This document shows, in pieces, positions 2,339-28,871 of a DNA stretch of 64,000 nucleotides (position 1 is its first letter; every line of letters begins with the position of its first letter). The position numbers and the translations under genes were made by a program. This DNA is from Lepidodermella squamata. Taxonomy: Eukaryota > Animalia > Gastrotricha. Where the stretch lies: positions 62,001 through 126,000 of the forward strand of contig JBLDXI010000056.1 in assembly GCA_047495785.1 (NCBI GenBank), given 5' to 3'. The notes under the pieces are model-generated. The model saw only the letters and a list, made by a program, of their open reading frames with translations, was not told the DNA's origin and ran no database searches.

Positions 2339-5300
2339 TCAATTTACATTACTCGTCTTATAATGGCCATGGGCAAGCGTTGCCACACCATCGGCACATA
2401 CCCACCGTTTATCATCGTACGGCGTCATTGCCACTTTAGTATTTTGAATCGACACAACTCGGTGGTTAAAAGAACGAATTTGATTGAACTTCACAGCCAA
2501 TGGCACCTTTTCTAAAACGCAATTTCTGTAGTCATCTGCTGCTATGTTGCGCTTGACACAAGTTTTCTTAATGCCTTTAGCCTTCTTCATTTCTTTCATG
2601 TCTTCCATGACGATGCAATAGTTTTTAGCCCGGACTCCAATAAATTCAACAATATTTTTGCCCACGCTTTCATCTTTCATTTTACCAATCACTTTTTTAT
2701 TTTTATCGGAGTAACAAAAATGATCTTTCGGATAATCTGAGAAATCCATTAGGTGGTCATAAGCTTTCAAATCGTGATACACATCTTCCGTTTGGATGTG
2801 GTAGCAAAGAGAATCCGTGTCAGTAAACAGAAGTTTTGCATTTGACCCATAATGCTTTTTAATAGTATTGTAATGAAAGTCATACATGAGGACTTTTGAC
2901 AGCTCCAGAACACAGGCGCCGACAATTATTGGCCTATCATATACGATGGATGTCTTTGCCATGTTAACTGAAATTAAATTATCAGAGATAAGTTTAGCGC
3001 TTTTGAAATTGGGCTTATTAATCAGCTTTTGTAACTGGTCTTCGCGCGTTACGAATCTAGCATCCGACCGTTTTCTGAGGTTTTCACATGTTTTGCCAAA
3101 TATAGCGTTGTTCATTAATTTAAAAAAATCTTTGTCGACTTCAGTTTTAGCTTGTTTTCGCATTTCAGTGTTGAATTCAATGTAAGGGGCCAGCCATTTG
3201 CTCTGTTTGAATTTCAGAACTTTGTGTATCTTACTCAATACCAAGCCATTTTCCAGGGCTTGTTTGAGGTTTCTATAATGTAAAACATAACTGGTTTTCG
3301 GCTTGAGGTTAGAAACTAGTTTGTCAACTTTCCCAGGTTTCGGTAGCGAGAGTTCGTTGGAAATGTTCTTCATGAATGGGCTTGGTTCACACGTCATTTG
3401 TTCAGCACAGAATGGATAATCGTTGTGCAGATCGTGTAGCTGTTCCGGGTAGTCAAGGTCGACTTCAAAGATGTACCCGTACTTATCATCCTCTAACAGC
3501 TCCATGATGACATCGTTATTGAAGTTTTTAACGTCACACCATTGGAATTCTCCAATTGGCAGTGCCTGAGACATCGCCCAGCCGTACAGATTGTTTGCGT
3601 CGAGGTAGATAATGTATGAGCTTTCTTTGTTCTTCACATATTTCGCCATGTACTTATTATTTGCTTCCGCATGCCTGTGGACAATGACACTCATACCGCC
3701 TCTCAGCCCTCTTTCTATGAACTCCAGCTTTTTTTCATCTTGTAGGAGCTCAATGCTCACTCCGGTCTTCTTCAGCATTGCATCCCAAGATAAGCCAGGC
3801 GCTGTCAAATACCAAGCAGGATCCAGACCGTAATGTCCCTGACAAGTCGCCCGGAAAGTTTCAAAACAATCAGCAAGCAGCAAAACGTCAGTCTTCAAAT
3901 AAAGGTGGTGGTAATCCAACATAGTTTTGCAGTCAAACTTGTCCCAAACCCGCTGAGCATGCTTGTATTCTTCGTCAGAAATCGAAACAGGCTCCATTTT
4001 CCCCCCTGCTGTAGCGCTTGAATTTAACGATGATGCAAAAGATTCGATAGGTGGTAATTTGTTCTCTAGTAAGCGATCTTTGTTGTCTATATACTCATAA
4101 ACCCCCTTACGCAAAAGCAGGTCAGCTTGCTCCTCATTCAGCCCTTTGAACTGGCTCCTCAGATGTTTGAATTTCCCACCGGATGCCTTCAGATTTTCCA
4201 CGCATTGTTCCAAACTGGTGCTCATGAACTGGAAGCTGTCGATGAATCTCAGCCACCCAACGGTGAAACTGAGATATTTCTCCTCACTATTTACTATTGC
4301 TTTTAACCGCATCAAATTAAAATTGTTGGCATCTTTCTTTAACATTTCATTATATTTGTTTATTTCATCACCAATGGCTTGCATAATAAAATGGCTATCA
4401 TAGCCCCGCAAGTTATGAAAGACAACTGGGGTATATGTATTTTTATAACTGTATTGTAAATTACATCTGCTATGTGCAGCTCCTCGAAATTTACCTGTGA
4501 GATGATCATGATCTCTAACTTTCGAATCACCATCATTCCGATCAGCTACGAATGTTCTGTTACAGATGTGGCAAGCCGATGCATTGTCATACTCTTTTTG
4601 TTGTTCAGCAGTTAATTTCTCCATTGCGACATTCGTATTATTGAGATACTCTCTAATTTTCTTTTGTTGTCGAAACAAATACTGCAAAAAACTAGAGGTT
4701 GAATCAAAAGTATGATAACTGGAGCGAAATGAGTCAACAGTACTAAGGAAATAACAACCGTAAGAATTAGCTTCATGCCTTTGGTAAATTTCGGAGTTTT
4801 CTCCCTTCTTCTCGCTGGCGTTAAGCAAAGTGCTTTCCGTATCACAGTAAAAAATGAACGGAACAGGCAACTGCTTTGCATAGTTTTTGAATAGGCAAAA
4901 CTTGTTCTCAGGGAAAGCCACCTTCACTTTATCGGAGAGCACTACACACTTGTTGTTTTTCAAGTGGTTCTCATGGCTTGTCTGGCTTGAAAAAGGAACC
5001 AAACACTTCATACACCAGTAAGTTTGATGCTCGTGCGATCTAGTGGAAGCTAATAGTCGGCTAACATTCTTCAGCCAGCTAAAATGGGCTGTCCGGCCAT
5101 CATTTGTTCGAAGTAAATCAATTGTTCTTGGATAATTCTGTTCTGAGGCATAGAAAGGAATAATGTTGTGCTTACCATTCTCCTCGTAGTAATCCAAAAT
5201 ATTTAAACATAGCTGATTGTTCTCTTCCAGCTTTGCGATGTCTTGTAAATTGACGGGGAAAGAGACGCCATCGCAATTGATCTCACGCTCATACTTTGTG

Positions 5301-6247
5301 TAATTGGTGATACGATGTGGATTCGCATCAACTGGATGAAGGCACGCAAGCATACTCCAGATGATACATTTTTCATCCGAATTTTGAACGTTAACAACGG
5401 CATTCTTTTTCTTTATGTATTCTGGCGTTGCAATAAAACTTCCTCCACCCAGTGGCTGGTATTTATAAACCCATAATCTAGCCCCTCGAATATCCTCAAC
5501 TGTCCACCCACTGCCTCTCGCTTGAAATTCCTCTATACTATTCCCGAGCTGTGAAAAGAGTAGATCAGCGCAATCGGAAATTTGATCTGGACGGAGAAGT
5601 GTTGGAGCTGCAGCTTTGGTTGAACTCCATTTGAAAAATACTTTTTGCAGATCATTATTTTCCATTTTGAAATTGATTTCAATGGTCAGCGTCGCTTTGA
5701 TAGGCCCAAATTTGCCTAATTGAAATGCCAACTCATTTTTTATTTTATTTTTCATTCTCGAAGTGTAGGAGTGGTAGTCTCTTTCAGTATTGAAATGAAT
5801 AAATTTGGTTTTTTGGATGACCCTATTGAATCGCCCGGAGCCTTCTTTTCTTTCGTAACGAACATAATCAGACTTCTCGAGACTGTTTGTCGATTGAATG
5901 TGCACATAATCAGAATTGACAAGCCTTTGAAAACTAGGACCACCGATCTTAATGTGCTTATAAGTTTCGGGATTTATTACATAACCTTCCCTACTTGGCT
6001 TTTTAATGAATTTGCTAGCCTTTAAAACATATCCCTTTTTCTTCAGTTCTTCGTACTTACCATCGCCTATTATAATATTCCCGCCAGTTAATGGATCAGA
6101 TGCCCATCCAATAGGAGCTTTCGATGTGTACTTGACAAACTGATTGATTCTCTCGTCATAATAATATTCGCCTTTGCTAATCAAACGATTGAATGCTCGA
6201 GAATTTATAGACAATTTTCTGCGTGTTTCAGGATTAATGACCTTCAT
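2339..6247 (-). CDS. Protein-primed family B DNA polymerase (pPolB) with N-terminal extension and inserted endonuclease VII-like zinc domain
   Basis: Exo motifs (YCDTES, FHNLRGYD, YLKTDVLLL), Pol motifs (YLDANNLYG, KLMNNAIFGK, FTDTDS) and CHIC...VRDHDHLTGKFRGAAHSRCN insertion. 1302 aa, uninterrupted. Confidence 0.97.
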   Translation of the reverse strand: MKVINPETRRKLSINSRAFNRLISKGEYYYDERINQFVKYTSKAPIGWASDPLTGGNIIIGDGKYEELKKKGYVLKASKFIKKPSREGYVINPETYKHIKIGGPSFQRLVNSDYVHIQSTNSLEKSDYVRYERKEGSGRFNRVIQKTKFIHFNTERDYHSYTSRMKNKIKNELAFQLGKFGPIKATLTIEINFKMENNDLQKVFFKWSSTKAAAPTLLRPDQISDCADLLFSQLGNSIEEFQARGSGWTVEDIRGARLWVYKYQPLGGGSFIATPEYIKKKNAVVNVQNSDEKCIIWSMLACLHPVDANPHRITNYTKYEREINCDGVSFPVNLQDIAKLEENNQLCLNILDYYEENGKHNIIPFYASEQNYPRTIDLLRTNDGRTAHFSWLKNVSRLLASTRSHEHQTYWCMKCLVPFSSQTSHENHLKNNKCVVLSDKVKVAFPENKFCLFKNYAKQLPVPFIFYCDTESTLLNASEKKGENSEIYQRHEANSYGCYFLSTVDSFRSSYHTFDSTSSFLQYLFRQQKKIREYLNNTNVAMEKLTAEQQKEYDNASACHICNRTFVADRNDGDSKVRDHDHLTGKFRGAAHSRCNLQYSYKNTYTPVVFHNLRGYDSHFIMQAIGDEINKYNEMLKKDANNFNLMRLKAIVNSEEKYLSFTVGWLRFIDSFQFMSTSLEQCVENLKASGGKFKHLRSQFKGLNEEQADLLLRKGVYEYIDNKDRLLENKLPPIESFASSLNSSATAGGKMEPVSISDEEYKHAQRVWDKFDCKTMLDYHHLYLKTDVLLLADCFETFRATCQGHYGLDPAWYLTAPGLSWDAMLKKTGVSIELLQDEKKLEFIERGLRGGMSVIVHRHAEANNKYMAKYVKNKESSYIIYLDANNLYGWAMSQALPIGEFQWCDVKNFNNDVIMELLEDDKYGYIFEVDLDYPEQLHDLHNDYPFCAEQMTCEPSPFMKNISNELSLPKPGKVDKLVSNLKPKTSYVLHYRNLKQALENGLVLSKIHKVLKFKQSKWLAPYIEFNTEMRKQAKTEVDKDFFKLMNNAIFGKTCENLRKRSDARFVTREDQLQKLINKPNFKSAKLISDNLISVNMAKTSIVYDRPIIVGACVLELSKVLMYDFHYNTIKKHYGSNAKLLFTDTDSLCYHIQTEDVYHDLKAYDHLMDFSDYPKDHFCYSDKNKKVIGKMKDESVGKNIVEFIGVRAKNYCIVMEDMKEMKKAKGIKKTCVKRNIAADDYRNCVLEKVPLAVKFNQIRSFNHRVVSIQNTKVAMTPYDDKRWVCADGVATLAHGHYKTSNVN

Positions 6248-6291
6248 TATTCACCAGAAGTGTTTGTGATTTTTGATACCAGTATATAACC

Positions 6292-6389
6292 TATATATAG
6301 AAAATAATTTTTAAGCCATTACCGAGAATTGTCAATAGTAAATTTTGATTTTTTAAGAAAAACGCCTTAAAAATTATTTTCTATATATA
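6292..6389. promoter_or_regulatory. 24-bp perfect inverted repeat with TATATA arms; putative symmetric bidirectional promoter
   Basis: TATATATAGAAAATAATTTTTAAG (6292-6315) and its reverse complement (6366-6389) lie between the divergent pPolB and 86-aa ORF starts. Confidence 0.6.
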
Positions 6390-6395
6390 AATTAT

Positions 6396-6656
6396 ATGAG
6401 TTTATATACTGAACCTATCATGACAACTATAAGCATTACAAACGACTGCTCTCCCACCAAAGAGAAAAGGTCTGTCATCAGAAGTGGCGATGCCAGTTAC
6501 CCGCGTTGGGTAAAATACGCCACGGAAGAGGAGCGGAAAGAGGCTAGAAAACTATCGATGAATGCGGCGAAGAAAAGATATGAGGACAAAAAGAAAAGAA
6601 TCATGCAGGAGTACATGCAGTTAAAAGCCCTTTTAATGAATATTTCTGCAAATTAA
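6396..6656 (+). CDS. Small basic helical protein of the Polinton (86 aa)
   Basis: ATG-initiated ORF filling the gap between pPolB and integrase; charged helix KYATEEERKEARKLSMNAAKKRYEDKKK. Confidence 0.7.
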   Translation: MSLYTEPIMTTISITNDCSPTKEKRSVIRSGDASYPRWVKYATEEERKEARKLSMNAAKKRYEDKKKRIMQEYMQLKALLMNISAN

Positions 6657-6768
6657 TTTAAGAATTTATTTCTACCTATAAGATAAGAAGTGTTTGTGAT
6701 TTTAGCCTTATCATCAGGGCATATGAAAATGTGACGGTTCCATATGCCTTGCATGCCAATTTAAATCA

Positions 6769-8313
6769 TTAATCAATAACATTTTCTGCATTTTCCCATG
6801 TGGGTTTGTCATAACCCGACCATTTGATTAAAACCAACTCTTTTCCTTTAACTTTCTTCCTATCCAAAATTTTCTCAACTCTATACACGTCATCTACCTG
6901 CTGTTTCGATTTTTGCATTTCTTGCTCGTAAAAACTACCGAAAACAGGCTCGCCGTCCATTGCTTCTATCTGGTATGTTCTCGGATATGTGTCATTTATT
7001 TTTACAACTCGCAATAGTTCTTCGCTCCATGAAGGGTGATATCCTTTTTCGAATGCGCCTTTTACGCGGCTTATCCTAATCACGTCACCCAGCGCAAATT
7101 TCGGCTTTTCCAATTTTTCTTCTCGTTCCGGGGGATTCAGCCTAGAATGGACTTTGTTGTGGTTTTTGGGATCGCTGGCCTCGATGGGAGTCATTCCTAT
7201 CGACCGATGCAGAGAATTATTATAATCACTGACCAAGCTATCGAGCATGTCAACCCAGTTACGGGTGTTGTCCAGTGTGAACCTTTTCCACATCTTGGTT
7301 TTCAAAGTTCGGTTGAACCTTTCTATGATAGGATTGTGAAAATTCTCATAAGTCGAATACCTGTTAACATTATTAGCTTTCAGCCATTTCGTGAACACAG
7401 CATTGTAAAATTCACTGCCTTGATCTACCCACATATTTTTGGGCTTCCTGTTGCTTTCTCGGACCACAGACAAAAATGCATCAAAAACATTTTTTGCATC
7501 CTTGCTCTTAAGTGCGACAGCCCAAGCATATTTGGAAAAGCAATCTATAATCGTGAGTAAATACTTATGCTGGTTATTTTCTTCGGATAAATCGCTCAGA
7601 AACACGATATCCATGCCCCAGGTTTCGTCGATATCGTGAATATACACTCGCCTGCGGGGAAAATGCTTCCGGGCCGGTTTATGAAGTTCCTCGGAGAGAA
7701 CGTGGAATTTTACTTTGCTTGAGCTTTGATCTGCATCCGTCTCTTTTTTCGACGCTGGGACTGCTTGCGTTGTTTTGGCGCCGCTTTGCGCTTTTTTCCT
7801 TGGTCGTTTTGGTTGCGGAACCTCGCCGATATATTTTGTTCCAGTATAATCCACAGGTTTCCTTTGCCGCAATTCGTATCCTTCTCCGCGGCACTCGCGT
7901 TCTTTAGGAGGAAGCTCATGGCCCGTCAGCCCTTGACCGCCATGGAATCTATCGGCTAAGCCTCCTTCGTGAAAGGTTTTGAAAACGAAGGCAGCCATGG
8001 CTCTCTCGTATCCGTTTTTAGAATCGTCGTTGGCTATCTTGAAAGCTTCTTCGGCTAGAAGTCTGTCTGCTCTTGTCCGCATTTCTCGATCTTTAAATTT
8101 CCAATAGTAATAGTCGTGAGTTTTAGCTGCTTTGTCCAAATCATTGATTCCTTCATATCCTTCCTTCATGCGCTGGACGAAATTTGTACCTGGCCCAGCG
8201 TAACTGTATTTCTGCGTGTTGTTGAATGATCCGTTGGAACGATGCTCGCCTTTGACCGGGTAAGAGGGAAGATGCAATTCTACCGGCAAGTTATTGATAA
8301 TTCCGTCGAACAT
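6769..8313 (-). CDS. Fusion of parvovirus-type phospholipase A2 domain, RVE (DDE) integrase and chromodomain
   Basis: N-term YAGPGT Ca-loop and DLDKAAKTHDYYY (HD dyad); integrase WGMD, VDQGSEF, IERFNRTLK; C-term YRVEKILDRK...IKWSGYDKPTWE chromodomain. Confidence 0.95.
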   Translation of the reverse strand: MFDGIINNLPVELHLPSYPVKGEHRSNGSFNNTQKYSYAGPGTNFVQRMKEGYEGINDLDKAAKTHDYYYWKFKDREMRTRADRLLAEEAFKIANDDSKNGYERAMAAFVFKTFHEGGLADRFHGGQGLTGHELPPKERECRGEGYELRQRKPVDYTGTKYIGEVPQPKRPRKKAQSGAKTTQAVPASKKETDADQSSSKVKFHVLSEELHKPARKHFPRRRVYIHDIDETWGMDIVFLSDLSEENNQHKYLLTIIDCFSKYAWAVALKSKDAKNVFDAFLSVVRESNRKPKNMWVDQGSEFYNAVFTKWLKANNVNRYSTYENFHNPIIERFNRTLKTKMWKRFTLDNTRNWVDMLDSLVSDYNNSLHRSIGMTPIEASDPKNHNKVHSRLNPPEREEKLEKPKFALGDVIRISRVKGAFEKGYHPSWSEELLRVVKINDTYPRTYQIEAMDGEPVFGSFYEQEMQKSKQQVDDVYRVEKILDRKKVKGKELVLIKWSGYDKPTWENAENVID

Positions 8314-8359
8314 TTCACAATGCTTATCACAGCATTAGAAATTTCTAACCTGAATTAAA

Positions 8360-9082
8360 ATGATCAATTTTGATGAAATAATTCCAAAAAGCGAGTCTAT
8401 GCCACTCAATATTTCCCCTTTTTACCCGCAGCATTGTTTCCGAGCAATTATTATCGGTCCAAGTAATAGCGGGAAAACTAATGATTTGCTCAATATCATC
8501 CATCATTCTGTTTTTCATAAGCTGCACATTTACTCTAAAACCTTGGATGAAGACAAATACCAGTTTTTGATAAATTTGCAGAAAGCTAAAGAAGCCGAGT
8601 TGAAAATGAAAGGGGTAAACGAGTCACTTATCCACTTTTCCACAGATATAGCGGATGTCGTGCCCCTTGATAAGCTTGACAAGAAATATCAGCACTTGTT
8701 TGTCTTTGATGATATTTGTCTGGAAAATGCTAAAAGCCAAGAGAAATACATCGGCGATCTCTACATCAGGTCGCGAAAGTACAATTGTTCCGTGGTTTAT
8801 TTGAGTCAGTCATATTTCAAAATTCCGAAAATAATTCGCGACAATGCGCAGTTCATTGTTTTGAAAAAGCTGAATGATGGACGCGAACTGCAAACAATTC
8901 ACAGAATTTATGCAGCAGAAATAGAAAAGCCTGTGTTCCTGAAAAAGTACGAATTGAGCGTTTCGTCCAATAATAATCACGGTTCTTTTATAATAGACAG
9001 CGTGATAAAACATAAATCGCTGAAGCTAAGAGCAAATTATACGGGGATTTTTGTCAGCGAATCTGATTCAGCTGGGGCCTGA
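8360..9082 (+). CDS. A32/FtsK-like genome packaging ATPase
   Basis: Walker A GPSNSGKT, Walker B LFVFDD, and RSRKYNCSVVYLSQSYFKIPKIIRDN motif typical of A32-like ATPases. Confidence 0.95.
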   Translation: MINFDEIIPKSESMPLNISPFYPQHCFRAIIIGPSNSGKTNDLLNIIHHSVFHKLHIYSKTLDEDKYQFLINLQKAKEAELKMKGVNESLIHFSTDIADVVPLDKLDKKYQHLFVFDDICLENAKSQEKYIGDLYIRSRKYNCSVVYLSQSYFKIPKIIRDNAQFIVLKKLNDGRELQTIHRIYAAEIEKPVFLKKYELSVSSNNNHGSFIIDSVIKHKSLKLRANYTGIFVSESDSAGA

Positions 9083-9319
9083 GCGCGCCCCTGGTAAATT
9101 CCCAAACTCTCTCAATATTTCTGAGGCCGGATTTATTAACTTGCGTCGGAAATCGCAATATTTGCTGTTTTAAGCTGGGTTAAACTAGAATGTTTTCCGT
9201 TCAAATGAGTCGAAACGGAATTTTTCCCATGGCCTGATACTCTATCTTGAATTCTTCAACACTGAACGCATTCGGTTAATTCGGTAAAATCTGATTGAGA
9301 AAATCTAGTGGTAAACCAA

Positions 9320-10474
9320 ATGCCGATCAAAGAACTCACGATCCCCGAACAGATAAAAATTTTGGAGCAATTAGATAGAGAAGAAAAACTGTATGATAAA
9401 AACCTCGCGCTTGCAAGTCATGATTCTTATGCGCTCAAGCACAAATTTGGGATGGAAACGGAACCCAGCCCGCTGACGGCCATGCAAACAGCATTCAACC
9501 AACGACCGACCACTGAAGCCATACGTAGTTTGCAAAATTCGATTAAGGAATTAGTTGTAAAAAAGAAACCACTAATAGCTAAACACGGCATTCCAACTAT
9601 TTCTGCCTCTGCATCCCCTGTGGCTCTAAAAATTCCTAAACTTGAGTATGAGAGTCCTGAGAAAAGTAGGTTAGCCTCTTCGCGAAATTCGCAAGATGAT
9701 GAGAGTGATCAAGACTCTAACTCGTCGAAGGAATCTGATGCTCAAGATGGGACATTTACCACAGACGAAATGAACACTATCATCCGTCAGCATAATTTCC
9801 CAACAATTGAGCAAATTAAACAAGAGGACATAGAAGAAGCCGTAGTGAGTTTGGCCACATACAACAGACAGGTATTGGGGGCCAGGCTCTCTAGTCTCAC
9901 ACGAGCGGGGAAAAGAGATTCAGAAGACTATAATAGAATTAAGCGCGACATCGCAGTTCTGAGAAACTACCGCGAAACATTAAAAAGCAAACAGCTAGGC
10001 GACGGTTTCACTAAACCAATCCCAAAAAATCTCCAAAGGTTTGGGCGATTTTATGTACGCAAGGAAGATTTACTCGACGGTTGGCTCCGCGTCAGAAAAA
10101 AGAACCAAAGTAGAGTGTTTGACGAGCAAATTTCCGATGGTGTGAGAAATCTCATTTTGAAGCGATATGAACCGAAAAAGTACAAATACACCCAAGAAGA
10201 TTTTTCGCACTTCCAAGAAATTTGTCGTAGGACCGGATACCAACCGAAACCTCACTCCAACGTAAGATCTGAACTCGCAATTTCTAGGCAGTCCGGTTCT
10301 GCGCTTTTTGTGACCTTACAGGATGCGCAAAAGCGTATGCTGCATTGTTTAGGAGAAATTAAAGCAGGTAATAACAATGAAGCCATTAGGAACGAATTAG
10401 TGTCTATAGCGGACTTGTTGCTGAAGCATGGAAAAATAACGAAGGAAGAATACACAACAGTTTGTAGTATATAG
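9320..10474 (+). CDS. Polinton hypothetical protein, probably virion-associated
   Basis: Long ORF with ATG at 9320, 16 nt after a TCTA motif. C-terminal GEIKAGNNN...NEL...D.LLK.G.I motif recalled from Polinton proteins. Confidence 0.8.
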   Translation: MPIKELTIPEQIKILEQLDREEKLYDKNLALASHDSYALKHKFGMETEPSPLTAMQTAFNQRPTTEAIRSLQNSIKELVVKKKPLIAKHGIPTISASASPVALKIPKLEYESPEKSRLASSRNSQDDESDQDSNSSKESDAQDGTFTTDEMNTIIRQHNFPTIEQIKQEDIEEAVVSLATYNRQVLGARLSSLTRAGKRDSEDYNRIKRDIAVLRNYRETLKSKQLGDGFTKPIPKNLQRFGRFYVRKEDLLDGWLRVRKKNQSRVFDEQISDGVRNLILKRYEPKKYKYTQEDFSHFQEICRRTGYQPKPHSNVRSELAISRQSGSALFVTLQDAQKRMLHCLGEIKAGNNNEAIRNELVSIADLLLKHGKITKEEYTTVCSI

Positions 10475-10498
10475 AGAATTATCTAGCTTCCAAATAAA

Positions 10499-11245
10499 AT
10501 GAGTCTGAGCCCGATTTTCTTACCACTAGAGTATCTTTCAAATAATCGAAGTTCTCGAAATAACACCATCGACCGATACCTCAATGATAAAATAGACTTC
10601 ACTGGAAGGCGAATTGCAGTTAGTTATATTCATTTCAGCGATACGTTTCACAACGTTTCTGCTCGTTACGGAAACAATACATTGAAATACTCGCTGAACG
10701 AAGAAATATTCGAAACAGTTTTTCCTGATGGAACGGACACCTTCCAAGATTTTAACAATTATTTGCATTTCCAGATGAAAATAAACGGACATTTTGCCGT
10801 TGACAGCGCGAAAGGAGCAGAAATTTTCGGCATCAATATTAGTGTCAACCCCGTATTCAGTTGCATTAGCGTTAGGATTGCGGAGAATTATCGTTTGATG
10901 GTAGAAACTGACGCTATGGCCCGGTTTCTCGGGGTCAACGTAGGCTCCTACGACCACGATTTCAATTCTCAAAACGTCCCTGATGTGACTATGGGGCTGG
11001 ATACAATGTTTGTTCATTGTTCCGTGGTTAATAATAGCGTCATCCCCGAATATAACACAGTTATTTTTACTTGCCCTATCAACAAAAAATTTGGGGAACA
11101 CGTCAACTACATCCCGAACGAGAAAAGGTTCCTAATGTGCACAAACGCGAACACGCAGAATATTCGAGTCTGGCTCACCAATCAAGAGGGAAACGAGATT
11201 TACTTCGTCGAAAGTAGGTGGGGGATAGGTATAGATATAATCTAG
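10499..11245 (+). CDS. Minor capsid protein (penton, single jelly-roll)
   Basis: 248 aa, beta-rich, with FHNVSARYGNN, FVHCSVV and IRVWLTNQEG motifs typical of Polinton pentons; upstream of the MCP. Confidence 0.8.
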   Translation: MSLSPIFLPLEYLSNNRSSRNNTIDRYLNDKIDFTGRRIAVSYIHFSDTFHNVSARYGNNTLKYSLNEEIFETVFPDGTDTFQDFNNYLHFQMKINGHFAVDSAKGAEIFGINISVNPVFSCISVRIAENYRLMVETDAMARFLGVNVGSYDHDFNSQNVPDVTMGLDTMFVHCSVVNNSVIPEYNTVIFTCPINKKFGEHVNYIPNEKRFLMCTNANTQNIRVWLTNQEGNEIYFVESRWGIGIDII

Positions 11246-11269
11246 TGCTTATCTAGTTATTGCTGAATT

Positions 11270-11587
11270 ATGAATAATCGAAAAAGAAAGCGCGTTTACA
11301 TTTCTGGCCGAGGTTTCGTCGACGTTGGTAAACACATTTTATCAAAAATAATAGCAGTATCAGCTGAACCAGCCCAAAATTTTGTCAAAGCAGCGCTGAA
11401 ATCTGGTTCAGAAGCTGCTGGAGATAAAGTGGGAAGTTTTGTAGCAACGAAGTTGGCTGAAAAAGTTCTGCCTAGTCATGAAACAACTAATCTTAAAGCC
11501 ATAGAGGAGCTCGAACGCAAAATTAAAAATAATATAAGTTCATATTCGGGCTCTGGCTTCAAAAAAGTTGAATTTAAAAAAATCTAA
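11270..11587 (+). CDS. Small basic core/virion protein precursor (pVII-like)
   Basis: Basic N-terminus RKRKRVYISGRGF followed by an amphipathic helix; GxG putative adenain sites (SGRG, SGSG); lies between penton and MCP. Confidence 0.65.
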   Translation: MNNRKRKRVYISGRGFVDVGKHILSKIIAVSAEPAQNFVKAALKSGSEAAGDKVGSFVATKLAEKVLPSHETTNLKAIEELERKIKNNISSYSGSGFKKVEFKKI

Positions 11588-11601
11588 TCCTTTGGTAAAT
11601 T

Positions 11602-12981
11602 ATGCTTCAACAAGAGATCGTCAATAACATTTTCGAGACTACTGAAATTCAAGATCGGGTCTTTGAGAAAAAGACATGGACGGAAACACCAGCACAGAAT
11701 TTCACTCAAGATCAAAATTCACAACCCTCGAAATTAATATTTTCCAGCTACAACCTAAAAGACAATTATTTACTAGTCAGAGAGGGGTACTTGGAGTTTC
11801 AATTGCAAATTAAAAGGAAGAATGGAGCCGCGTTCGTGAATACTGACAAGTATGCCATTCGGAATCACGTGTTGAGCCTGTTTGACAATATTGAAGTTCA
11901 AATATCGGATTCGGATCACAAAATCGAAGAGCTGCGGTTCCTCGAACATTGGGCCAACATCAATTTCCTTTTGAAATGGAGTCCTGGTTACGCCAATAGT
12001 TTAGGGGAAGAAGTGTTGTTTTCGAAAGACTGCCCGTTGGCTTTGGGAAGCACAACGCTAATTGCTGATGTGACGGCTGACACTTTCGATGCTTCGAAAG
12101 CTGCAGCTAACAAGGGTTTGATAACGCGAAGCAGCTATGTTAAATCTACTGAGGCCACCGTCACTTTATATCTAAAAGACTTGCCCTTTTTCAATTCGTA
12201 TCAGGGAATTTTCACGAAGTCTCGATTTAGGATTATTCTCACCCCGAACTATAATCGACCTTTGATTTATGTGATTGTCGCGGCTGATACAGGTACACCT
12301 GAAGGATTAACTTATCATTTCAATCGGGCTAATATGTACATCCCGGAGGTAACGCTAATGAACCAACAGAAACTTTCGATAATGAAAAAGTTCAACGAGG
12401 GATTCACGAAAATTCATAAATGGATATCGATTGATCCATATCAGTCCTGTCAATTTGCTGCTAATACCACGAATATTCAGTACACAATCAGCACTGAAAT
12501 AAGGAAACCAAATTGGGTGTATATTGTTCTTTGCCCCGATTACTCCGATGAGGAATATCCGAAGAAACTCACACAGATATATAACACGTGGAACGTTACT
12601 TCATATTCCCTTTTGATTAATAACAAAGAAGCCTTTAATGAATCCAATGTTTCTTTTGCTAAGCTGAAAGCTCACCGGTTATACAATTACATAAAACAGA
12701 ATATGCATCAGAACAGCGATAGGGAAAGTCTGAATACGGGATGTCAGATTTCGTACATGGAATTCTGCAACTTGTACAGAATTCTTTGCTTTTGCTTGGA
12801 CGACGTAGATGCTACTTCCATTTACAATTCTCGAGCAGATAACACTGTTTCTGTAGTATTCAAAGCGACGGTCGGTGCGGTGAATAAGCCTCTTGTGATT
12901 TATTCGTTCATTGAAAGGGAAAAGGAGATATGCTTCAACTACAAGCATGACTCTGTTGACATTAGTCTTACCAGCGTCTAA
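11602..12981 (+). CDS. Major capsid protein (double jelly-roll, hexon-like)
   Basis: 459 aa, beta-strand rich, LSLFDNIEVQI and RKPNWVYI motifs, position within the morphogenesis module. Confidence 0.85.
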   Translation: MLQQEIVNNIFETTEIQDRVFEKKTWTETPAQNFTQDQNSQPSKLIFSSYNLKDNYLLVREGYLEFQLQIKRKNGAAFVNTDKYAIRNHVLSLFDNIEVQISDSDHKIEELRFLEHWANINFLLKWSPGYANSLGEEVLFSKDCPLALGSTTLIADVTADTFDASKAAANKGLITRSSYVKSTEATVTLYLKDLPFFNSYQGIFTKSRFRIILTPNYNRPLIYVIVAADTGTPEGLTYHFNRANMYIPEVTLMNQQKLSIMKKFNEGFTKIHKWISIDPYQSCQFAANTTNIQYTISTEIRKPNWVYIVLCPDYSDEEYPKKLTQIYNTWNVTSYSLLINNKEAFNESNVSFAKLKAHRLYNYIKQNMHQNSDRESLNTGCQISYMEFCNLYRILCFCLDDVDATSIYNSRADNTVSVVFKATVGAVNKPLVIYSFIEREKEICFNYKHDSVDISLTSV

Positions 12982-13006
12982 TGCAAAATTTCTAATCTAG
13001 CGGTAA

Positions 13007-13636
13007 ATGAGCCATAAGTATTTGGAATACGAATTGCCCCTCACGGATAGTCAGCTGGAGAAACTCCAGGGTGCGGTAAAGAACAAAAAGTCAATAACAC
13101 TTAAATTTAGCAAACAGGTTATTCACCAAAACGAAAATTTACGCAAGTTGATGCTTACCCAAACTCAAATAAACAAAGTAGAGAAGCACAAAGCCAACGA
13201 CACCGGTGTTCAATTGAAGCTCAGTTTATCACAACTGAAGAAAAGTCAATCAGGCGGCCTACTTCCCATCCTGCCCATACTTGCGAAAGCCGCAACGATT
13301 GCTGCACCTTTAGCCCTGAGTGCTGTATCAGGGCTGATAAACGGCGCAACCAACGCGATCGGTAATAAATTAGCGGGGAAGGGCGTAAACGAGACCACCG
13401 TACAACTATCAGTTCCAAAAGAGGATTTGAATGAACTGGTCAAAATGGTCGATATGTTAGAAAATAAGAATTTATTGCCACTGGGCAGCAAACTTTCGAT
13501 TGATCGCGATATTGAGCAAAAGGGTGGCTCATTCGTTGTTCCACTAGTTGCTAGCCTGCTAGGGACATTTTTACCTACATTGTTCAGGGCGAATAAGGGA
13601 AATGGAGTGTATTTTCCATGGGAGTCAAAAAACTAG
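13007..13636 (+). CDS. Core/membrane-active virion protein precursor (pX/pVI-like)
   Basis: LMLTQTQINK motif, then two GG-preceded hydrophobic helices (QSGG-LLPILPILAK; QKGG-SFVVPLVASLLG). Ends ...WESKN* on a slippery heptamer. Confidence 0.75.
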   Translation: MSHKYLEYELPLTDSQLEKLQGAVKNKKSITLKFSKQVIHQNENLRKLMLTQTQINKVEKHKANDTGVQLKLSLSQLKKSQSGGLLPILPILAKAATIAAPLALSAVSGLINGATNAIGNKLAGKGVNETTVQLSVPKEDLNELVKMVDMLENKNLLPLGSKLSIDRDIEQKGGSFVVPLVASLLGTFLPTLFRANKGNGVYFPWESKN

Positions 13637-14067
13637 GGCGCTTCTTCCCACTTTCGAATTCGGATATTGACAAAATGATGTACTCGAGAGTTGGGAAGAA
13701 GTACAATGGATGTTACCCCAGGCATCTCTTGCCTATACATTTGAAAAATGGATACTATGTAATCAACTTGGATGATTTTGGAGGAGGAACGCACTGGGTA
13801 GGAATGCAGGTAACTGATGGGGAAATAATTTATTTCGATAGCTTTGGGTTCATTTGTCCCAATGAAGTCATTGAGAGGCGAAGTAATCGCGACATTTGGT
13901 ATTCCACTCATGAAATTCAGCACACTAAAAGTGTGGCGTGCGGTTTTTACGTTGTTTACTTCCTGTCTGAGCTGGCAAAAAATCGCAATAAGCTTGAAAT
14001 TCTCCTCGATTTCACAAATGATGGGTCCATTATGAATGATAACAAGCTTAAAGATCTGATGTTTTAG
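13618..14067 (+). CDS. Adenain-like (clan CE) cysteine maturation protease
   Basis: GGGTHWV (His), YFDSFG (Asp), IQHTKSVACGFY (Gln/Cys). Overlaps the upstream ORF in the -1 frame. Confidence 0.95.
   Translation: MGVKKLGRFFPLSNSDIDKMMYSRVGKKYNGCYPRHLLPIHLKNGYYVINLDDFGGGTHWVGMQVTDGEIIYFDSFGFICPNEVIERRSNRDIWYSTHEIQHTKSVACGFYVVYFLSELAKNRNKLEILLDFTNDGSIMNDNKLKDLMF
13627..13701 (+). other. Putative -1 programmed ribosomal frameshift signal
   Basis: A_AAA_AAC at 13627-13633 in the 0 frame, 7-nt spacer, then 13641-13657 pairs with 13684-13701. The -1 frame is the protease ORF. Confidence 0.8.
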
Positions 14068-14073
14068 CAAAGA

Positions 14074-14232
14074 ATGCATTGTTTGAAGTGTAAGGAGCAT
14101 ACTGAAACCTTTAACGAACAATGAAAGGTTACGGAAAACAAGCAAGTTGGCAAATCTCAAATTTGCGGCTCCAAAAAGAGCAAATTTGTGAATTGTCGAA
14201 TCAGGACAAAATATTTTGTTTGTAAAAGGTAG
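14074..14232 (+). pseudogene. Degraded small zinc-ribbon gene (DUF5679-like)
   Basis: MHCLKCKEHTETFNEQ*KVTENKQVGKSQICGSKKSKFV: CxxC...(S)xxCG.KKSKFV pattern with an internal TGA at 14122 and the third Cys replaced by Ser. Confidence 0.6.
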
Positions 14233-14249
14233 TAAGTGCTTTCCTGGTT

Positions 14250-14723
14250 ATGGACGAAGAATTCGAATATTGCCTCTCTCTTTTAGCCGATATAAAAAAC
14301 AAGAGCGTGAAATGCCATTCTAAATCAGAATGTGAAACGTGCTCATCACAGTTGCAAATTGATCATAGTCTCCACATCAACTTTTGTCCAAAATGTGCCA
14401 TCGTACACCCTTTCATAGATTACTATCAAAGGGTTAGCCGCTCCCCAACATACAAGCGGAAGTGGCATCTCATGACAAAAATCAGAAAATTAGGACTAAT
14501 TCTCAAATGGTATGAGCTCGATGACATTATGTCAAACTTCAAGAAAATAGATAAGCTCTATTCCACCGAATTTCCCGGTAAAAATATGATCAATGTAGAA
14601 TTTGTGCTGAAGTACTTGTCACTGATATTGGGCTATGAAGACATCGCTAATAAAATCCCTCTGGACCGTTCTAAGTATACAATTTTACGCTGGCATGAAA
14701 AATTAAATCTAATCATTACTTAG
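14250..14723 (+). CDS. VLTF3-like late transcription factor
   Basis: CETC...CPKC zinc ribbon, followed by YKRKWHL and a KNMINVEFVLKYL segment resembling poxvirus/NCLDV VLTF3 homologues. Confidence 0.65.
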   Translation: MDEEFEYCLSLLADIKNKSVKCHSKSECETCSSQLQIDHSLHINFCPKCAIVHPFIDYYQRVSRSPTYKRKWHLMTKIRKLGLILKWYELDDIMSNFKKIDKLYSTEFPGKNMINVEFVLKYLSLILGYEDIANKIPLDRSKYTILRWHEKLNLIIT

Positions 14724-14728
14724 TTGAA

Positions 14729-15442
14729 ATGAAATCTAGTTCAATTTTTATTCCTAGCGAATGGTCGGGAAGCTCGCATGGGTCGGATTTATTTCTACGC
14801 GCCGATGGGAAGAAAGGACTCATGGGTAATATGAACGCAAATAATTTCAAAATTGAAAATCTCGGCCGCCCCGTTTTCGAAAATGACGCAGCATCGAAAT
14901 CTTGGGTGGAAGAAAACACGTTGAATGAAAAAGAATCCAGGCAACTTATCGAATCGTATAAGCCGCTGCAGTACGCTGATGACAGAACCATTGACATGAA
15001 TGGTGGTCGGATAACAAACGTGGCGTATCCCGTAGATCCTTTTGACGTAGTCAACAAGCAATACGTTGATGGCCAAACATTTTTAGGCTTCGGTGAGAGT
15101 CATGTGAATGACCAAACGAAAATGCCGGTAACAAGGGTTATAACCCACACTTTGCTGGTTCAAATTAATGATGAGTTGTCTTTTCTCGAAAACATGTTGG
15201 CTAATGTGCAATTTTGGTTTAGAATTTGGGGAAATGTCTCGCCAGGCTGCACTTGTGATTTCATGAAAAACGGCAGTGTCTTAATTTCTAAATATTTTTC
15301 ATTCGACTACGACGCGATCCGAAATATAACCGAATACTGTACTTTCGTAGAACAGTTTGAAAATGGTGACACTTTCAGCATCATGATGTCGTCCAGCAAA
15401 CCTATGACTGTTGAATTTTGTTTAAAAATATCTAATGTTTGA
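14729..15442 (+). CDS. Fibre/adhesin-like virion protein
   Basis: Two copies of M-x-x-x-(K/R)I-x-N(L/V)-x-x-P----D(A/V)-x-x-K-x-(W/Y)V(E/D), as in YadA-stalk and tail-fibre repeats, then a beta-rich C-terminal domain. Confidence 0.6.
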   Translation: MKSSSIFIPSEWSGSSHGSDLFLRADGKKGLMGNMNANNFKIENLGRPVFENDAASKSWVEENTLNEKESRQLIESYKPLQYADDRTIDMNGGRITNVAYPVDPFDVVNKQYVDGQTFLGFGESHVNDQTKMPVTRVITHTLLVQINDELSFLENMLANVQFWFRIWGNVSPGCTCDFMKNGSVLISKYFSFDYDAIRNITEYCTFVEQFENGDTFSIMMSSSKPMTVEFCLKISNV

Positions 15443-15483
15443 TAAACGTGAATAAAAGTGACACACAGGTTCACATATAAAAT

Positions 15484-15897
15484 TCAGAAAAAGGTGACTG
15501 TGTCATTAATGGCTTTCGGGGTCATTGAGTTCGCTATATTTGTGTGCGTTTTCTTGCCATCTAGTTTCGGTTCACGATTATAAGTTACTCTTTGACTTTT
15601 TGATTGGATCTTCTGATTTTTTTTGACGAATTCGCGGAATTCATCGTTGTGACTGTTACTTACATCAGAACGGTCGTCTTCAGAAAAAGTTTTCTGAATA
15701 TAAATATATACGACAACAGCGCAAATGAAAAGGACACCGAATGTTATCAAAAATTTACTATAAGCGTATTCGTTTTCCTGAATTTTTAATTGTGTGGATA
15801 GACATTTTAGTTTATCAGCATAAAACTTCCCAAGTAAAGAGCTCTTGCCTTGTAATATTTTCAACATATTCTCTATTCTTCCTATGTTTTCTTCCAT
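15484..15897 (-). CDS. Polinton single-pass membrane protein, unknown function
   Basis: 137-aa ORF with hydrophobic span FLITFGVLFICAVVVYIYI; tightly packed with its neighbours. Confidence 0.7.
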   Translation of the reverse strand: MEENIGRIENMLKILQGKSSLLGKFYADKLKCLSTQLKIQENEYAYSKFLITFGVLFICAVVVYIYIQKTFSEDDRSDVSNSHNDEFREFVKKNQKIQSKSQRVTYNREPKLDGKKTHTNIANSMTPKAINDTVTFF

Positions 15898-16745: not shown

Positions 16746-16781
16746 TATAAATTATTTTACATATATTTGATTAAGAAAATA

Positions 16782-17254
16782 TTCCAGGTACCAGGTTCCT
16801 GATTCCAGATTCTGGGCCCCGGGAATTTGTCAGATTATGCAATGACCCCACTTATATATTGTTCCACGTTCCTGATTCCAGATTCTGGGCCCTGGGAATT
16901 TGTCAGATTATGCAATAGCCCCCACTTATTCCAGGTTCCAGGTTCCTGATTCCAGATTCTGGGCCCCGGGAATTTGTCAGATTATGCAATAGCCCCACTT
17001 GTTCCAGGTTTCACGTTCCTGATTCCAGATTCTGGGCCCCGGGAATTAGTCAGATTATGCAATAGCCCCACTTATTCCAGGTTTCACGTTCCTGATTCCA
17101 GATTCTGGGCCCTGGGAATTAGTCAGATTATGCAATAGCCCCACTTATTCCAGGTTTCACGTTACTGATTCCAGATTCTGGGCCCTGGGGATTTGTCAGA
17201 TTATGCAATAGCCCCACTTATATATTGTTCCAGATTCCAGGTCCCAGATTCCCA
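16782..17254. repeat. Subterminal tandem array, ~6.5 copies of a 73-74 bp unit
   Basis: GATTCCAGATTCTGGGCCC recurs at 16801, 16874, 16948, 17021, 17094 and 17167. Confidence 0.95.
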
Positions 17255-17604
17255 ATCGCTCGCCTCTTACCCTTTTAATGCACACCCTATACCCAATATA
17301 TTTTTCCGTTTTAGAAACGCGCCTCTACTTACCATTTCTTCTCAAAATTACCAATTAACTAAGTATCTCTCCTAATTTCCTTCAAATTAATTGACCATTT
17401 TTTTCATTCTCAAATTTTCAAAATTTTAAAATCAATTTTTAATTTTTCAATTTCTCAATTTTCCACATTTGTCATTTCAATTTTTTAAAAAGTGTGTATA
17501 TCGGCCTCACTGTTTTCGTACCGGCACATAGGCACTACTTGCACATTTTTCATTATACTTTTTCGTTTGGATTTTCGTTGCAAGTTTGATATTTTAGCTT
17601 CAAC

Positions 17605-18276
17605 ATGAACAAGATCATCCTTGTTACTCTTGTCATGGTGAGTTCAAGGCCTCGATAATGATATCTTCTTCCGTAATATCATTTTATTTAACAGGCTTTC
17701 GCCGCTGTGTTGGCTGTATCTGCAGAGGAAAACAACGGCTTTGTGGCTCGTGAGGCTGCCTACGAAGAAGAGATAGCTCGTGAGGAAAACAAGAATGCGA
17801 AATCTGGTCCTAACAGGCAAACCTCCCTGAACCCTAAAGCTGGCTCAGCAGCCAACAAGAATGTGAAATCTGGTCCTAACAGGCAAACCTCCCTGAACCC
17901 TAAAGCTGGCTCAGCAGCCAACAAGAATGCGAAATCTGGTCCTAACAGGCAAACCTCCCTGAACCCTAAAGCTGGCTCAGCAGCCAACAAGAATGCGAAA
18001 TCTGGTCCTAACAGGCAGACCTCCCTGAACCCTAAAGCTGGCTCAGCAGCCAACAAGAATGCGAAATCTGGTCCTAACAGGCAAACCTCCCTGAACCCTA
18101 AAGCTGGCTCAGCAGCCAACAAGAATGCGAAATCTGGTCCTAACAGGCAAACCTCCCTGAACCCTAAAGCTGGCTCAGCAGGCAACAAGAACAAAAGCAA
18201 CAAAACCGGCAAGAATGCGAACAAGAACCACCCCGGTCCAGTCGCACGGCATTCTTTGAGCGCAAAGTCTTTCTAA
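17605..18276 (+). CDS. Secreted cationic repeat protein precursor (~204 aa); exons 17605-17637 and 17695-18276
   Basis: MNKIILVTLVM/AFAAVLAVSA signal peptide split by a 57-nt GT-AG intron, acidic propiece, then six 22-aa Lys/Asn-rich repeats. Confidence 0.85.
17788..18183 (+). repeat. Six near-perfect 66-bp coding tandem repeats
   Basis: NKNAKSGPNRQTSLNPKAGSAA x6. Confidence 0.95.
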
Positions 18277-19312: not shown

Positions 19313-19713
19313 GATTGCGTTTCGAAAATATTCAATTTCCCTGCTTATTTTTTCAAATGTTCAATTCCAATTGACAATGAAGAACTAAGCATTAATTCTA
19401 CCACCCACTCCCTAATTTTTGGCAAGCCAGCCTTTTTCCATAAACTGCCGGTTTGTGCAAATACGCCGGTAGTTGTATTTCAGGAATTTTATATGAATGG
19501 CAGAAAATCATACATGTGTCCCCTCGCCTCTGTCATCGAGTTATCATTCGCCAAGTGCATCGGTATGCCCGAAACACGTGAATACGCCTCGTTATACACG
19601 TGAATCGCAGTTTAAACAGTTGGCGAAGTTCGTCCGGGCGATGCCTATAAAATCGGAAGGAGGCGCTGCTCATTTTTAAGAATCATTTTCTCATTATTAA
19701 TTTTCGTTTCATC

Positions 19714-28465: not shown

Positions 28466-28871
28466 ATTCGACTTGCATGTGTACTTTCGTTCTTGTCCAG
28501 ATGCTGAGAATATTTCCTGAAATCATGTGTGCCATCAATTCAAGTGTTTCCTTTGGAGCTACGTTCCTTATCAATTAATCAACCCGGTGATTTTCTTAAA
28601 TAAATCGCTTTAGATTCAAGATCTTCGTTTTCTTCTTGCCAATGCTTTTAAATTAAGGCACTTGGCACATGTCATTCTTTTCATGCGTATGTTTTATCAA
28701 TATTTAGAAGTGGAGAGGGAGGAAAAGGAGAGGAAAAAAGCGTATTATTTGCTCGACGAGCGAGAGAAAATATACTCCCTCTTTACTTTATTGTGCTTCA
28801 ATGATTATTGTCCAAGTAATTAGTTCATGAGTCTGAAATTTTTCAGGATTTCAGCCAAAATGAATGATTCT

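Follow-up and report, generated by a model that had tools for sequence, protein, structure and literature searches.

A candidate -1 ribosomal frameshift signal that may join a predicted protease to the upstream protein in a Polinton-like element of an animal genome

Programmed -1 ribosomal frameshifting, in which ribosomes slip back by one base, is a hallmark of RNA viruses, retroelements and phages, but it is nearly unreported for DNA viruses and virus-like elements of eukaryotes. A Polinton-like element in the genome of Lepidodermella squamata (Gastrotricha; assembly GCA_047495785.1, contig JBLDXI010000056.1, positions 62,001 to 126,000 of the forward strand) raises the question of whether such an element also uses this mechanism, since its protease gene overlaps the end of the preceding gene in the -1 frame. 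The 64,000-nucleotide stretch analysed is called the window, and positions are counted from its first letter. The initial annotation, made from the sequence alone, proposed that a -1 frameshift cassette fuses a Polinton core protein to its maturation protease with gag-pro-like logic. Direct reading of the sequence and of its open reading frames confirmed the layout on which this proposal rests, the features of which are as follows.

2339..15442 (strand not assigned), gene-bearing part of the Polinton-like element
12989..13000 (+), two overlapping WWTCTAR motifs, 13-18 nt before the ATG of the upstream ORF
13007..13636 (+), upstream ORF of 209 aa, the zero frame
13597..13636 (+), overlap zone of about 12-13 codons in which both the zero frame and the -1 frame are open
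13598..13606 (+), Gly-x-Gly (aa 198-200 of the upstream protein), a candidate adenain-type cleavage site 9 residues before the junction
13618..14067 (+), adenain-fold cysteine protease ORF of 149 aa in the -1 frame, with its own ATG at 13618
13627..13633 (+), slippery heptamer A_AAA_AAC in the X_XXY_YYZ phase of the upstream ORF
13634..13636 (+), zero-frame stop UAG directly after the heptamer, the first half of the 6-nt spacer 13634-13639
13640..13702 (+), hairpin, a candidate frameshift stimulator

The gene-bearing part of the element holds a 1301-aa ORF (-) at 2339-6247, an integrase with PLA2-like and chromo domains (-), an A32-type packaging ATPase, and eight further plus-strand ORFs including the pair considered here. 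A retrovirus-type integrase (rve, E 5.5e-14), a packaging ATPase (Pox_A32, E 4e-9) and an adenain-like protease in one compact block are as expected of a Polinton/Maverick (adintovirus-like) element. In Pfam and PDB searches, however, the 1301-aa ORF gave no polymerase hit, only a weak Endonuclease VII stretch, and the 459-, 388- and 248-aa ORFs gave no hit that would assign them to capsid proteins. In addition, no terminal inverted repeats were found in the stretch analysed.

The upstream ORF ends TCA AAA AAC TAG, and the heptamer directly precedes its UAG. The -1 frame is open from 13597, the previous stop being at 13594, through to 14067. The hairpin is as the initial annotation had described it, a stem of 17 bp after a 7-nt spacer, plus one further terminal G-U pair, so that the arms are 13640-13657 and 13684-13702 and form 18 bp with one G:U inside, a 1-nt bulge on the 3' side (U13691) and a 26-nt loop, with an 11-bp lower and a 7-bp upper helix. 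The spacer is 6 nt, or 7 nt if the terminal G-U pair is not counted. The minimum free energy of 13634-13720 is -28.6 kcal/mol (z -3.72, with 0 of 200 dinucleotide shuffles as stable), while the hairpin alone gives -26.6 kcal/mol and persists in a 221-nt context. It is a plain hairpin, as the longest pairing between the loop and the next 68 nt is 7 bp, which 666 of 1000 shuffles reach. No Rfam family matched 13400-13900 at E up to 1.

Could such an arrangement be a coincidence in an A-rich coding overlap of an endogenous, perhaps silent copy? The site was picked after scanning 64 kb, 3% of all 87-nt windows of the whole 64 kb fold as well, and in-phase X_XXY_YYZ heptamers are not rare, occurring at 25 per 4019 codons (0.62% per codon); moreover, in the absence of detected terminal repeats, activity of this copy is unproven. 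However, only two of these heptamers lead into a long -1 ORF, and both lie in this 12-codon overlap, such that a heptamer by chance in the overlap is about 7%. Within 2339-15442 only 0.65% of 87-nt windows fold as well, making the hairpin the second most stable local fold in 13 kb of element, and combined with a top-1% hairpin at the correct spacing, the whole arrangement is well under 1% by chance. The hairpin also exceeds a null that keeps the protein and the codon usage (natural -28.4 against -14.9 +/- 3.2; 2 of 2000 randomisations as stable; z -4.19), whereas the best of 142 control stretches has z -3.08. The other in-phase heptamer, G_GGA_AAT at 13597, also leads into the protease frame, but it has no structure at the right distance and its middle residue varies in relatives, and it was rejected as the slip site. 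No stops or frameshifts were noticed inside the listed ORFs, although without a systematic check. Together with the conservation described below, these observations make mere coincidence very unlikely.

The -1 frame encodes a protease whose adenain fold is supported by several lines of evidence. A profile search against PDB hit adenoviral proteinase at E 3e-5, the AlphaFold2 model has a pLDDT of 93.7, and its top Foldseek hit is human adenovirus 2 proteinase (E 5e-6, TM 0.71). H59, D74, Q101 and C108 are invariant in 81 sequences. The single sequence nevertheless scores only 16.2 bits against the curated Pfam PF00770 cut-off of 21.3, and it is a distant relative, shorter than adenain.

The identity of the upstream protein is less certain. 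Its AlphaFold2 model has a confident N-terminal alpha/beta domain (aa 1-83), which is followed by a Gly-Gly plus hydrophobic segment resembling adenovirus protein X (about aa 83-115) and a conserved C-terminal tail. Pfam, PDB profile searches and Foldseek against PDB and BFVD gave nothing significant for the window protein. Among 28 family members, 3 match the adenovirus protein X family (Adeno_PX, PF05829) on the Gly-Gly plus hydrophobic segment, the best at 23.9 bits against a cut-off of 25 (E 3.8e-5), and the 'core protein' label of the initial annotation has therefore only weak support. G198 and G200 of the Gly-x-Gly site are nearly invariant (90% or more) in the 28 family members, and adenain sites are Gly-rich (PMC7998265), although cleavage here is inferred.

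Searches recovered 14 close and 15 more distant homologues of the upstream protein, homologous proteins being designated below by working numbers (P0001 and so on). All 14 close homologues, at 41-75% identity, end in Lys-Asn (12) or Lys-Lys (2) directly before the stop, including P0179, whose preceding residues have diverged, and P0184 at 33% also ends Lys-Lys-Asn. The ends of the two proteins are mutually codon-compatible only in the register of the window, and they then force AAAAAAY in three inferred same-contig pairs (P0001/P0007, P0002/P0008 and P0004/P0011), as read directly in the window, or AAAAAAG (P0174 or P0176 with P0009). All evidence on relatives is at the protein level and comes from automatic ORF calls. 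The -1 frame Lys-Lys could be kept for protein reasons, because basic residues before the motif are common in the family, and dual coding alone would conserve the run of A. Moreover, AAAAAAG, present in one sublineage, is probably a weaker site for eukaryotic ribosomes. The core of the 3' arm of the hairpin is encoded by a two-residue insertion (V25-G26) that is specific to this lineage and that 91% of 80 relatives lack.

An alternative is that the protease is made on its own from AUG 13618, either on a separate transcript starting inside the upstream ORF or by ribosomes that finish the upstream ORF at 13634 and restart 16 nt back. On this reading, the 19-nt overlap is only genome compaction, the run of A is kept by dual coding (Lys-Asn in one frame, Lys-Lys in the other), and the hairpin is incidental or helps a scanning ribosome recognise a weak-context AUG. 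Indeed, an AUG 9 nt before the heptamer is present in the window and in P0008, P0009 and P0011, so some independent initiation is not excluded, and residues 1-10 of the protease model are of low confidence, as expected of a free N-terminal tail. A hairpin some 14 nt after a weak AUG may aid its recognition, although the gap here is 19 nt and the hairpin spacing fits frameshifting (6 nt) better than start-codon pausing. However, the start is Met in only 4 of 9 lineage members, Leu in P0007, and called only from a later Met in P0010, P0012, P0016 and P0017, while the Lys-Asn/Lys-Lys-stop ending is kept in 14 of 14. That later Met lies inside helix 14-28 of the fold and after the L-S-N..I motif kept by about 80% of 80 relatives.

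Transcriptional signals and start-codon context also bear on independent initiation. The WWTCTAR motif, for which no published source was found in the library searched, looks like a promoter or initiator motif shared by the structural genes. There are 15 such motifs on the + strand of 8300-15700 against 6.8 expected, and ten of them lie 6-31 nt before 7 of the 9 plus-strand gene starts, but none lies before 13618, which confirms the remark of the initial annotation that the protease lacks the TCTA motif found before the neighbouring structural genes. The protease AUG has a weak context (no purine at -3), 5 other AUG triplets lie between 13007 and 13618, and 6 AUG triplets would have to be bypassed on a shared mRNA. 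Restarting after a 209-codon ORF is inefficient without a dedicated element. Independent initiation is accordingly regarded as unlikely, though it remains the strongest of the alternatives.

Beyond this lineage, the relationship between the two proteins takes other forms. Single ORFs holding both domains occur in other lineages (P0089, P0048, P0021, P0039, P0066 and P0109), all contiguous ORF calls, and ORFs of the P0027 cluster (4 sequences, 13 contigs) run from the tail motif of the upstream protein into the protease in one frame, suggesting that the joined protein is a natural state. The in-frame fusions are, however, mostly singletons in large genomic contigs and could be decayed copies or homopolymer assembly errors. 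The Dinothrombium protein P0014 also looked like a fusion, but its likeness to the upstream protein is short and of low complexity (E 2e-4; hhalign probability 55%), and it is treated as a hint only. In a second clade, the last 22 residues of the upstream protein are codon-compatible in the -1 register with the linker before the protease in P0048, P0089 and P0025, scoring 13-19 of 21 positions; shuffles reached the score in 0 of 200 trials for 17 of the 18 comparisons and in 5 of 200 for one, and the +1 register reaches only 9-12. In contrast, most distant relatives (90 of the 159 family proteins classified) are stand-alone proteases with their own Met, 2-9 residues before the conserved motif. 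Any frameshift is therefore a lineage feature, not a family rule.

Another possibility is that the joined protein is made, but that the shift happens at the nucleic-acid level, either by a polymerase that stutters on the run of six A and adds one A to a fraction of transcripts, or by gain and loss of an A between copies of the element, so that fused and unfused genes coexist in the population. The junction carries a run of A in every lineage seen, fused ORFs have longer Lys runs at or near the junction, and fused and -1 overlapping forms of the same segment coexist among relatives; transcriptional slippage is, moreover, reviewed together with frameshifting in PMC5009743. However, six A may be short for slippage by a cellular RNA polymerase, and slippage explains neither a strong, codon-independent hairpin 6 nt downstream nor why the zero-frame stop sits exactly after the heptamer in 14 of 14 relatives. 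This possibility is considered remote.

Taken together, the proposal of the initial annotation is supported but unproven, and programmed -1 frameshifting is the explanation favoured here with moderate confidence. In this hypothesis, the upstream gene and the protease gene are read from one mRNA that starts at the TCTA motif before 13007, and most ribosomes translate the 209-aa protein and stop at UAG 13634. A minority, held up by the hairpin, would slip back one base on the two lysine/asparagine codons and continue in the -1 frame, giving a 353-aa protein (209 + 144 residues) with the adenain-fold protease at its C-terminal end. The fusion would fix the ratio of protease to its partner, and would tie the protease to a protein with a segment like adenovirus protein X and conserved Gly-Gly and Gly-x-Gly sites, from which the protease could later cut itself free. 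That ribosomes actually shift here, the efficiency, the packaging of the fusion and its self-release are inferred. A_AAA_AAC is among the most shift-prone heptamers for mammalian ribosomes (PMC5009743), it gave 23% frameshifting with a 12-bp hairpin in reticulocyte lysate, and simple hairpins of 12 bp or more suffice (PMC3203594). However, the same study reports that natural frameshift hairpins have loops of 5 nt or fewer and that bulges lower efficiency, though less so on the 3' side, while the hairpin here has a 26-nt loop and a bulge.

While signals of this type are well known, no description of frameshifting in Polintons, Mavericks or adintoviruses was found in the library searched. If the hypothesis is correct, these elements make mRNAs that carry two ORFs, the amount of protease is set by translation rather than by a promoter, and the protease probably enters the particle attached to a partner that resembles adenovirus protein X. 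In this lineage, the protease gene should then not be called from the first AUG, and copies without that AUG are not necessarily dead. More speculatively, and rather unlikely on present evidence, the link between the protease and the protein encoded just upstream may be a rule across a wide branch of animal Polintons, realised interchangeably as a hard-coded in-frame fusion, as a long -1 overlap of 21 or more codons after a Lys-rich run, or as the compact heptamer-stop-hairpin cassette seen here. The maturation protease of this virus lineage would then normally be born attached to one of its own substrates, a DNA-virus counterpart of gag-pro, and the adenovirus partnership between the protease and a peptide cut from a precursor could be what remains of such a covalent link.

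Among known systems, the in-frame fusions of other Polinton lineages (the P0027 cluster, P0048, P0089, P0021, P0039, P0066 and P0109) have the same two domains in the same order with a Lys-rich junction, but the joined protein is encoded directly, so that every molecule of the upstream protein would carry the protease. In adenovirus, the maturation protease depends on a peptide cut from the C-terminus of a precursor, the pVI-derived cofactor (PMC4246237, PMC7998265), and the element shares with it the adenain fold, with the catalytic His, acidic residue, Gln and Cys conserved, as well as a partner protein that carries conserved Gly-Gly and Gly-x-Gly sites and a hydrophobic segment weakly matching adenovirus protein X in 3 of 28 family members. 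The adenovirus protease, however, is a separate gene product of about 204 aa, against 149 aa here, no frameshift is described in those two reviews, and no pVI relative was detected by sequence or fold; a cofactor role for the conserved C-terminal tail of the 209-aa protein is speculation. Retroviral gag-pro frameshifting, as studied for SRV-1 in PMC3203594, which also cites hairpin-driven sites in HIV and HTLV-2, likewise combines an X_XXY_YYZ heptamer with an RNA structure a few bases downstream and, as proposed here, extends a structural-type protein at low frequency into the maturation protease, which sets a ratio and would bring the protease into the particle. This likeness is one of logic only. 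The present case is a DNA element transcribed by the host, its candidate stimulator is a plain long hairpin with a large loop rather than a pseudoknot, the zero-frame stop abuts the heptamer so that the overlap after the slip site is zero codons, the upstream partner is a small protein weakly resembling adenovirus protein X rather than Gag, and some copies keep an AUG for the protease. Finally, there are cases in which a dsDNA virus uses a heptamer at the end of one gene to make a fixed minority of a longer product that shares its N-terminal part; those cases use prokaryotic ribosomes and have a different function, tail assembly, while here the setting is an animal nucleus and cytoplasm, which requires a mRNA that carries both ORFs.

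The reading of positions 12900–14300, together with the list of ORFs, confirms the layout at the junction of the two genes, in which the upstream ORF ends TCA AAA AAC TAG and the next ORF lies in the -1 frame. The heptamer is in the X_XXY_YYZ phase of the upstream ORF, and the stop codon of that ORF follows at once. The elements of the junction are as follows:
13007–13636 (+), upstream ORF encoding a 209-aa protein
13627–13633, heptamer A_AAA_AAC at the end of the upstream ORF
13618–14067, protease ORF (149 aa) in the -1 frame, which is open from 13597
13640–13657 and 13684–13702, the two arms of a hairpin predicted by RNAfold
The hairpin has 18 bp, with one internal G:U, a 1-nt bulge on the 3' side and a 26-nt loop, and is separated from the heptamer by a 6-nt spacer. 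The segment 13634–13720 folds at -28.6 kcal/mol (z -3.72), and none of 200 shuffles was as stable. In addition, the hairpin alone gives -26.6 kcal/mol and persists in a 221-nt context, although its loop shows no pseudoknot pairing beyond chance and no matching family was found in Rfam.

In-phase X_XXY_YYZ heptamers occur 25 times in the 4019 codons of the element, but only two of them lead into a long -1 ORF, and both sit in this 12-codon overlap. Only 0.65% of 87-nt windows in the coding part of the element fold as well as this one, while in the whole 64 kb the figure is 3%. Moreover, in a null model that keeps the amino acids of the protease and the codon usage of the element and redraws the synonymous codons, the folding energy is -14.9 +/- 3.2 kcal/mol against -28.4 kcal/mol for the natural RNA, and 2 of 2000 draws were as stable. 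The best of 142 control stretches reaches z -3.08, against -4.19 here. The hairpin therefore rests on the choice of synonymous codons, not on the protein sequence. A coincidence in a silent copy is regarded as very unlikely.

The junction belongs to a Polinton/Maverick-like element in an animal genome, as the flanks of the window hold animal-type genes (Sushi plus trypsin, SMN, Rer1 and protein kinase), whereas the block 2339–15442 holds an rve integrase with PLA2-like and chromo domains, an A32-type packaging ATPase and the protease. The surrounding features are as follows:
2339–6247 (-), 1301-aa ORF presumed to be the protein-primed polymerase
6769–8313 (-), integrase ORF with a parvovirus-type PLA2-like domain (aa 35–98, E 4e-7) in front of the rve core and a chromodomain at its C-terminus
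8342–14712 (+), region in which an A/T-flanked TCTA(A/G) motif, WWTCTAR, precedes plus-strand genes
16773–17284 and 17722–18249, two tandem arrays (periods 73 and 66 nt, about 6–8 copies each) just right of the element, with a partial second copy at 19700–20485, part of the region being repeated 1.8–2.1 kb further on
21188–24882 and 28867–32611, host gene block encoding Sushi-domain and trypsin-like proteins, duplicated in tandem (72–86% identity), with trypsin- and Sushi-encoding ORFs on the opposite strand (26330–28465, within 26177–28465) between the two copies
43232–43498 and 38614–39257, a 94-nt inverted repeat, 99% complementary, with a 79-nt spacer, and a CATG-rich 40-nt tandem and inverted array, both of which could be small foldback or MITE-like elements
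The presumed polymerase has no polymerase hit in Pfam or PDB and shows only an Endonuclease VII-like stretch at aa 553–596 (E 1e-4, just under the cut-off), and the presumed capsid ORFs gave no hits either. No terminal repeats were found, and no stops or frameshifts were noticed inside the listed ORFs. PLA2-like genes have been described in adintoviruses as separate virion accessory genes (PMC8502044). A fusion of PLA2 and integrase would be unusual.

The motif WWTCTAR lies 6–31 nt before 7 of 9 plus-strand gene starts, with 15 motifs against 6.8 expected, and looks like a shared promoter or initiator element, although no paper on it was found in the literature searched. It is absent before the protease and before ORF 14250–14723. 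In addition, the AUG of the protease has no purine at -3, and five other AUG triplets lie between 13007 and 13618. Both the missing motif and the weak context speak against independent initiation at 13618, either from a separate transcript or by restart after termination. This alternative remains possible because the AUG is present in this copy and stand-alone proteases are common in the family, but it is considered unlikely.

For the protease, a profile of ten relatives hits adenoviral proteinase in PDB at E 3e-5 and the ASFV protease at 3e-4, and an AlphaFold2 model built from 81 sequences has a pLDDT of 93.7, with adenovirus proteinases as its best Foldseek matches (E 5e-6, TM 0.71). Residues H59, D74, Q101 and C108 are invariant. 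By contrast, the 209-aa protein, which has a confidently predicted N-terminal alpha/beta domain (aa 1–83) followed by poorly ordered, Gly- and hydrophobic-rich later parts, has no relative by sequence or fold in PDB, BFVD or Pfam. Three of 28 family members match Pfam Adeno_PX on the invariant Gly-Gly plus hydrophobic segment, the best at E 3.8e-5 and 23.9 bits against a cut-off of 25, and virion accessory proteins with domains like adenovirus protein X have been described in adintoviruses (PMC8502044). The name ‘core protein’, which was given to it in the initial annotation, is thus a weakly supported label. Gly83-Gly84, Gly124/Gly126 and Gly198/Gly200 are invariant or nearly so in 28 sequences, which fits the Gly-rich sites that adenain cuts (PMC7998265).

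Relatives were compared at the protein level only. The upstream protein has 14 close homologues (41–75% identity), all of which end in Lys-Asn (12) or Lys-Lys (2) directly before the stop. One of these, P0179, keeps Lys-Asn although its preceding residues have diverged, and a more distant homologue, P0184, at 33% identity, ends Lys-Lys-Asn. Because the two genes overlap, the end of one protein and the start of the other constrain the same bases, and every pairing was tested for codon compatibility in the register of the window. The upstream homologue P0001 fits only the protease P0007, and the Ser-Lys-Asn endings fit the Met-Gly-(Val/Ile)-Lys-Lys-Leu starts, each such pair forcing AAAAAAY before the stop, while the two Lys-Lys endings fit only the protease P0009 and force AAAAAAG.

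The AUG of the protease, however, is not conserved. Among nine lineage members (48% identity or more), the codon at the 13618 position is Met in four and Leu in P0007, while four (P0010, P0012, P0016 and P0017) are called only from a later Met. That later Met lies inside helix 14–28 of the predicted fold and after the Leu-Ser-Asn..Ile motif, which about 80% of 80 relatives keep, so that proteins started there would lack a conserved part of the fold. The non-conserved AUG also stands against independent initiation. Moreover, residues V25-G26, encoded by the core of the 3' arm of the hairpin, are absent from 91% of 80 relatives and present in the window lineage.

In the wider family, an exhaustive profile search found 13,358 relatives of the protease, and 159 family proteins, namely the best 150 of that search and nine found earlier, were classified. 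Of these, 90 are protease-only, mostly with a Met 2–9 residues before the conserved motif, 24 start inside the domain, 24 carry C-terminal extensions, 20 carry N-terminal extensions and one carries both. Frameshifting, if real, is therefore a lineage feature. In the 24 with C-terminal extensions, including P0042, P0047, P0054 and P0062, the protease is at the N-terminus of a 185–570 aa ORF, which suggests fusion to a downstream partner. Among the N-extended proteins, P0089, P0039, P0048, P0021, P0066 and P0109 contain the upstream-protein family domain in the same ORF (E 4e-14 to 2e-4), and they are contiguous ORF calls from ENA, JGI, Logan and one EukProt transcript. In addition, ORFs of the P0027 cluster (4 sequences on 13 contigs) run from the tail motif of the upstream protein into the protease in one frame.

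A second, longer clade of the upstream protein (P0181–P0189, 253–292 aa) ends differently. Its last 22 residues are codon-compatible in the -1 register with the linker just before the protease domain in three fused ORFs, at 15–19 of 21 positions in P0048 (residues 234–254), 13–17 of 21 in P0089 (residues 248–268) and 15–18 of 21 in P0025 (residues 147–167). Shuffles reached these scores in 0 of 200 trials for 17 of the 18 comparisons and in 5 of 200 for one, and the +1 register reaches only 9–12. In that clade the same DNA segment is thus read in the zero frame as the tail of the upstream protein and in the -1 frame as the lead-in to the protease, which suggests a long-overlap version of the same link. 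The joined protein therefore appears to be a natural product in several lineages, reached by different routes, and such fusions are a further point against independent initiation at 13618.

It is proposed that one mRNA runs from the TCTA motif before 13007 and carries both ORFs. Most ribosomes would stop at 13634, while a fraction would pause at the hairpin, slip -1 on A_AAA_AAC and make a 353-aa protein ending in the protease, and the conserved Gly-x-Gly 9 residues before the junction could serve for self-release. The anatomy, the statistics, the protein-level conservation and the fusions were observed, but the shift itself, its rate, packaging and self-cleavage are inferred. Transcriptional slippage, or gain and loss of an A in the run, would be an alternative source of the change of frame, but is thought to be very unlikely.

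A_AAA_AAC is among the most shift-prone heptamers for mammalian ribosomes (PMC5009743). Plain hairpins of 12–15 bp stimulate frameshifting about as well as a pseudoknot, and the same heptamer gave 23% with a 12-bp hairpin in reticulocyte lysate, while bulges lower efficiency, less so on the 3' side (PMC3203594). The hairpin here has an uninterrupted 11-bp lower helix, but its 26-nt loop is larger than in the natural hairpin stimulators listed in that paper. In the literature searched, no paper describes ribosomal frameshifting in Polintons, Mavericks, adintoviruses or polintoviruses. The mechanism itself is classical, and what is unusual is its setting, a eukaryotic dsDNA virus-like element with the protease joined to a likely substrate.
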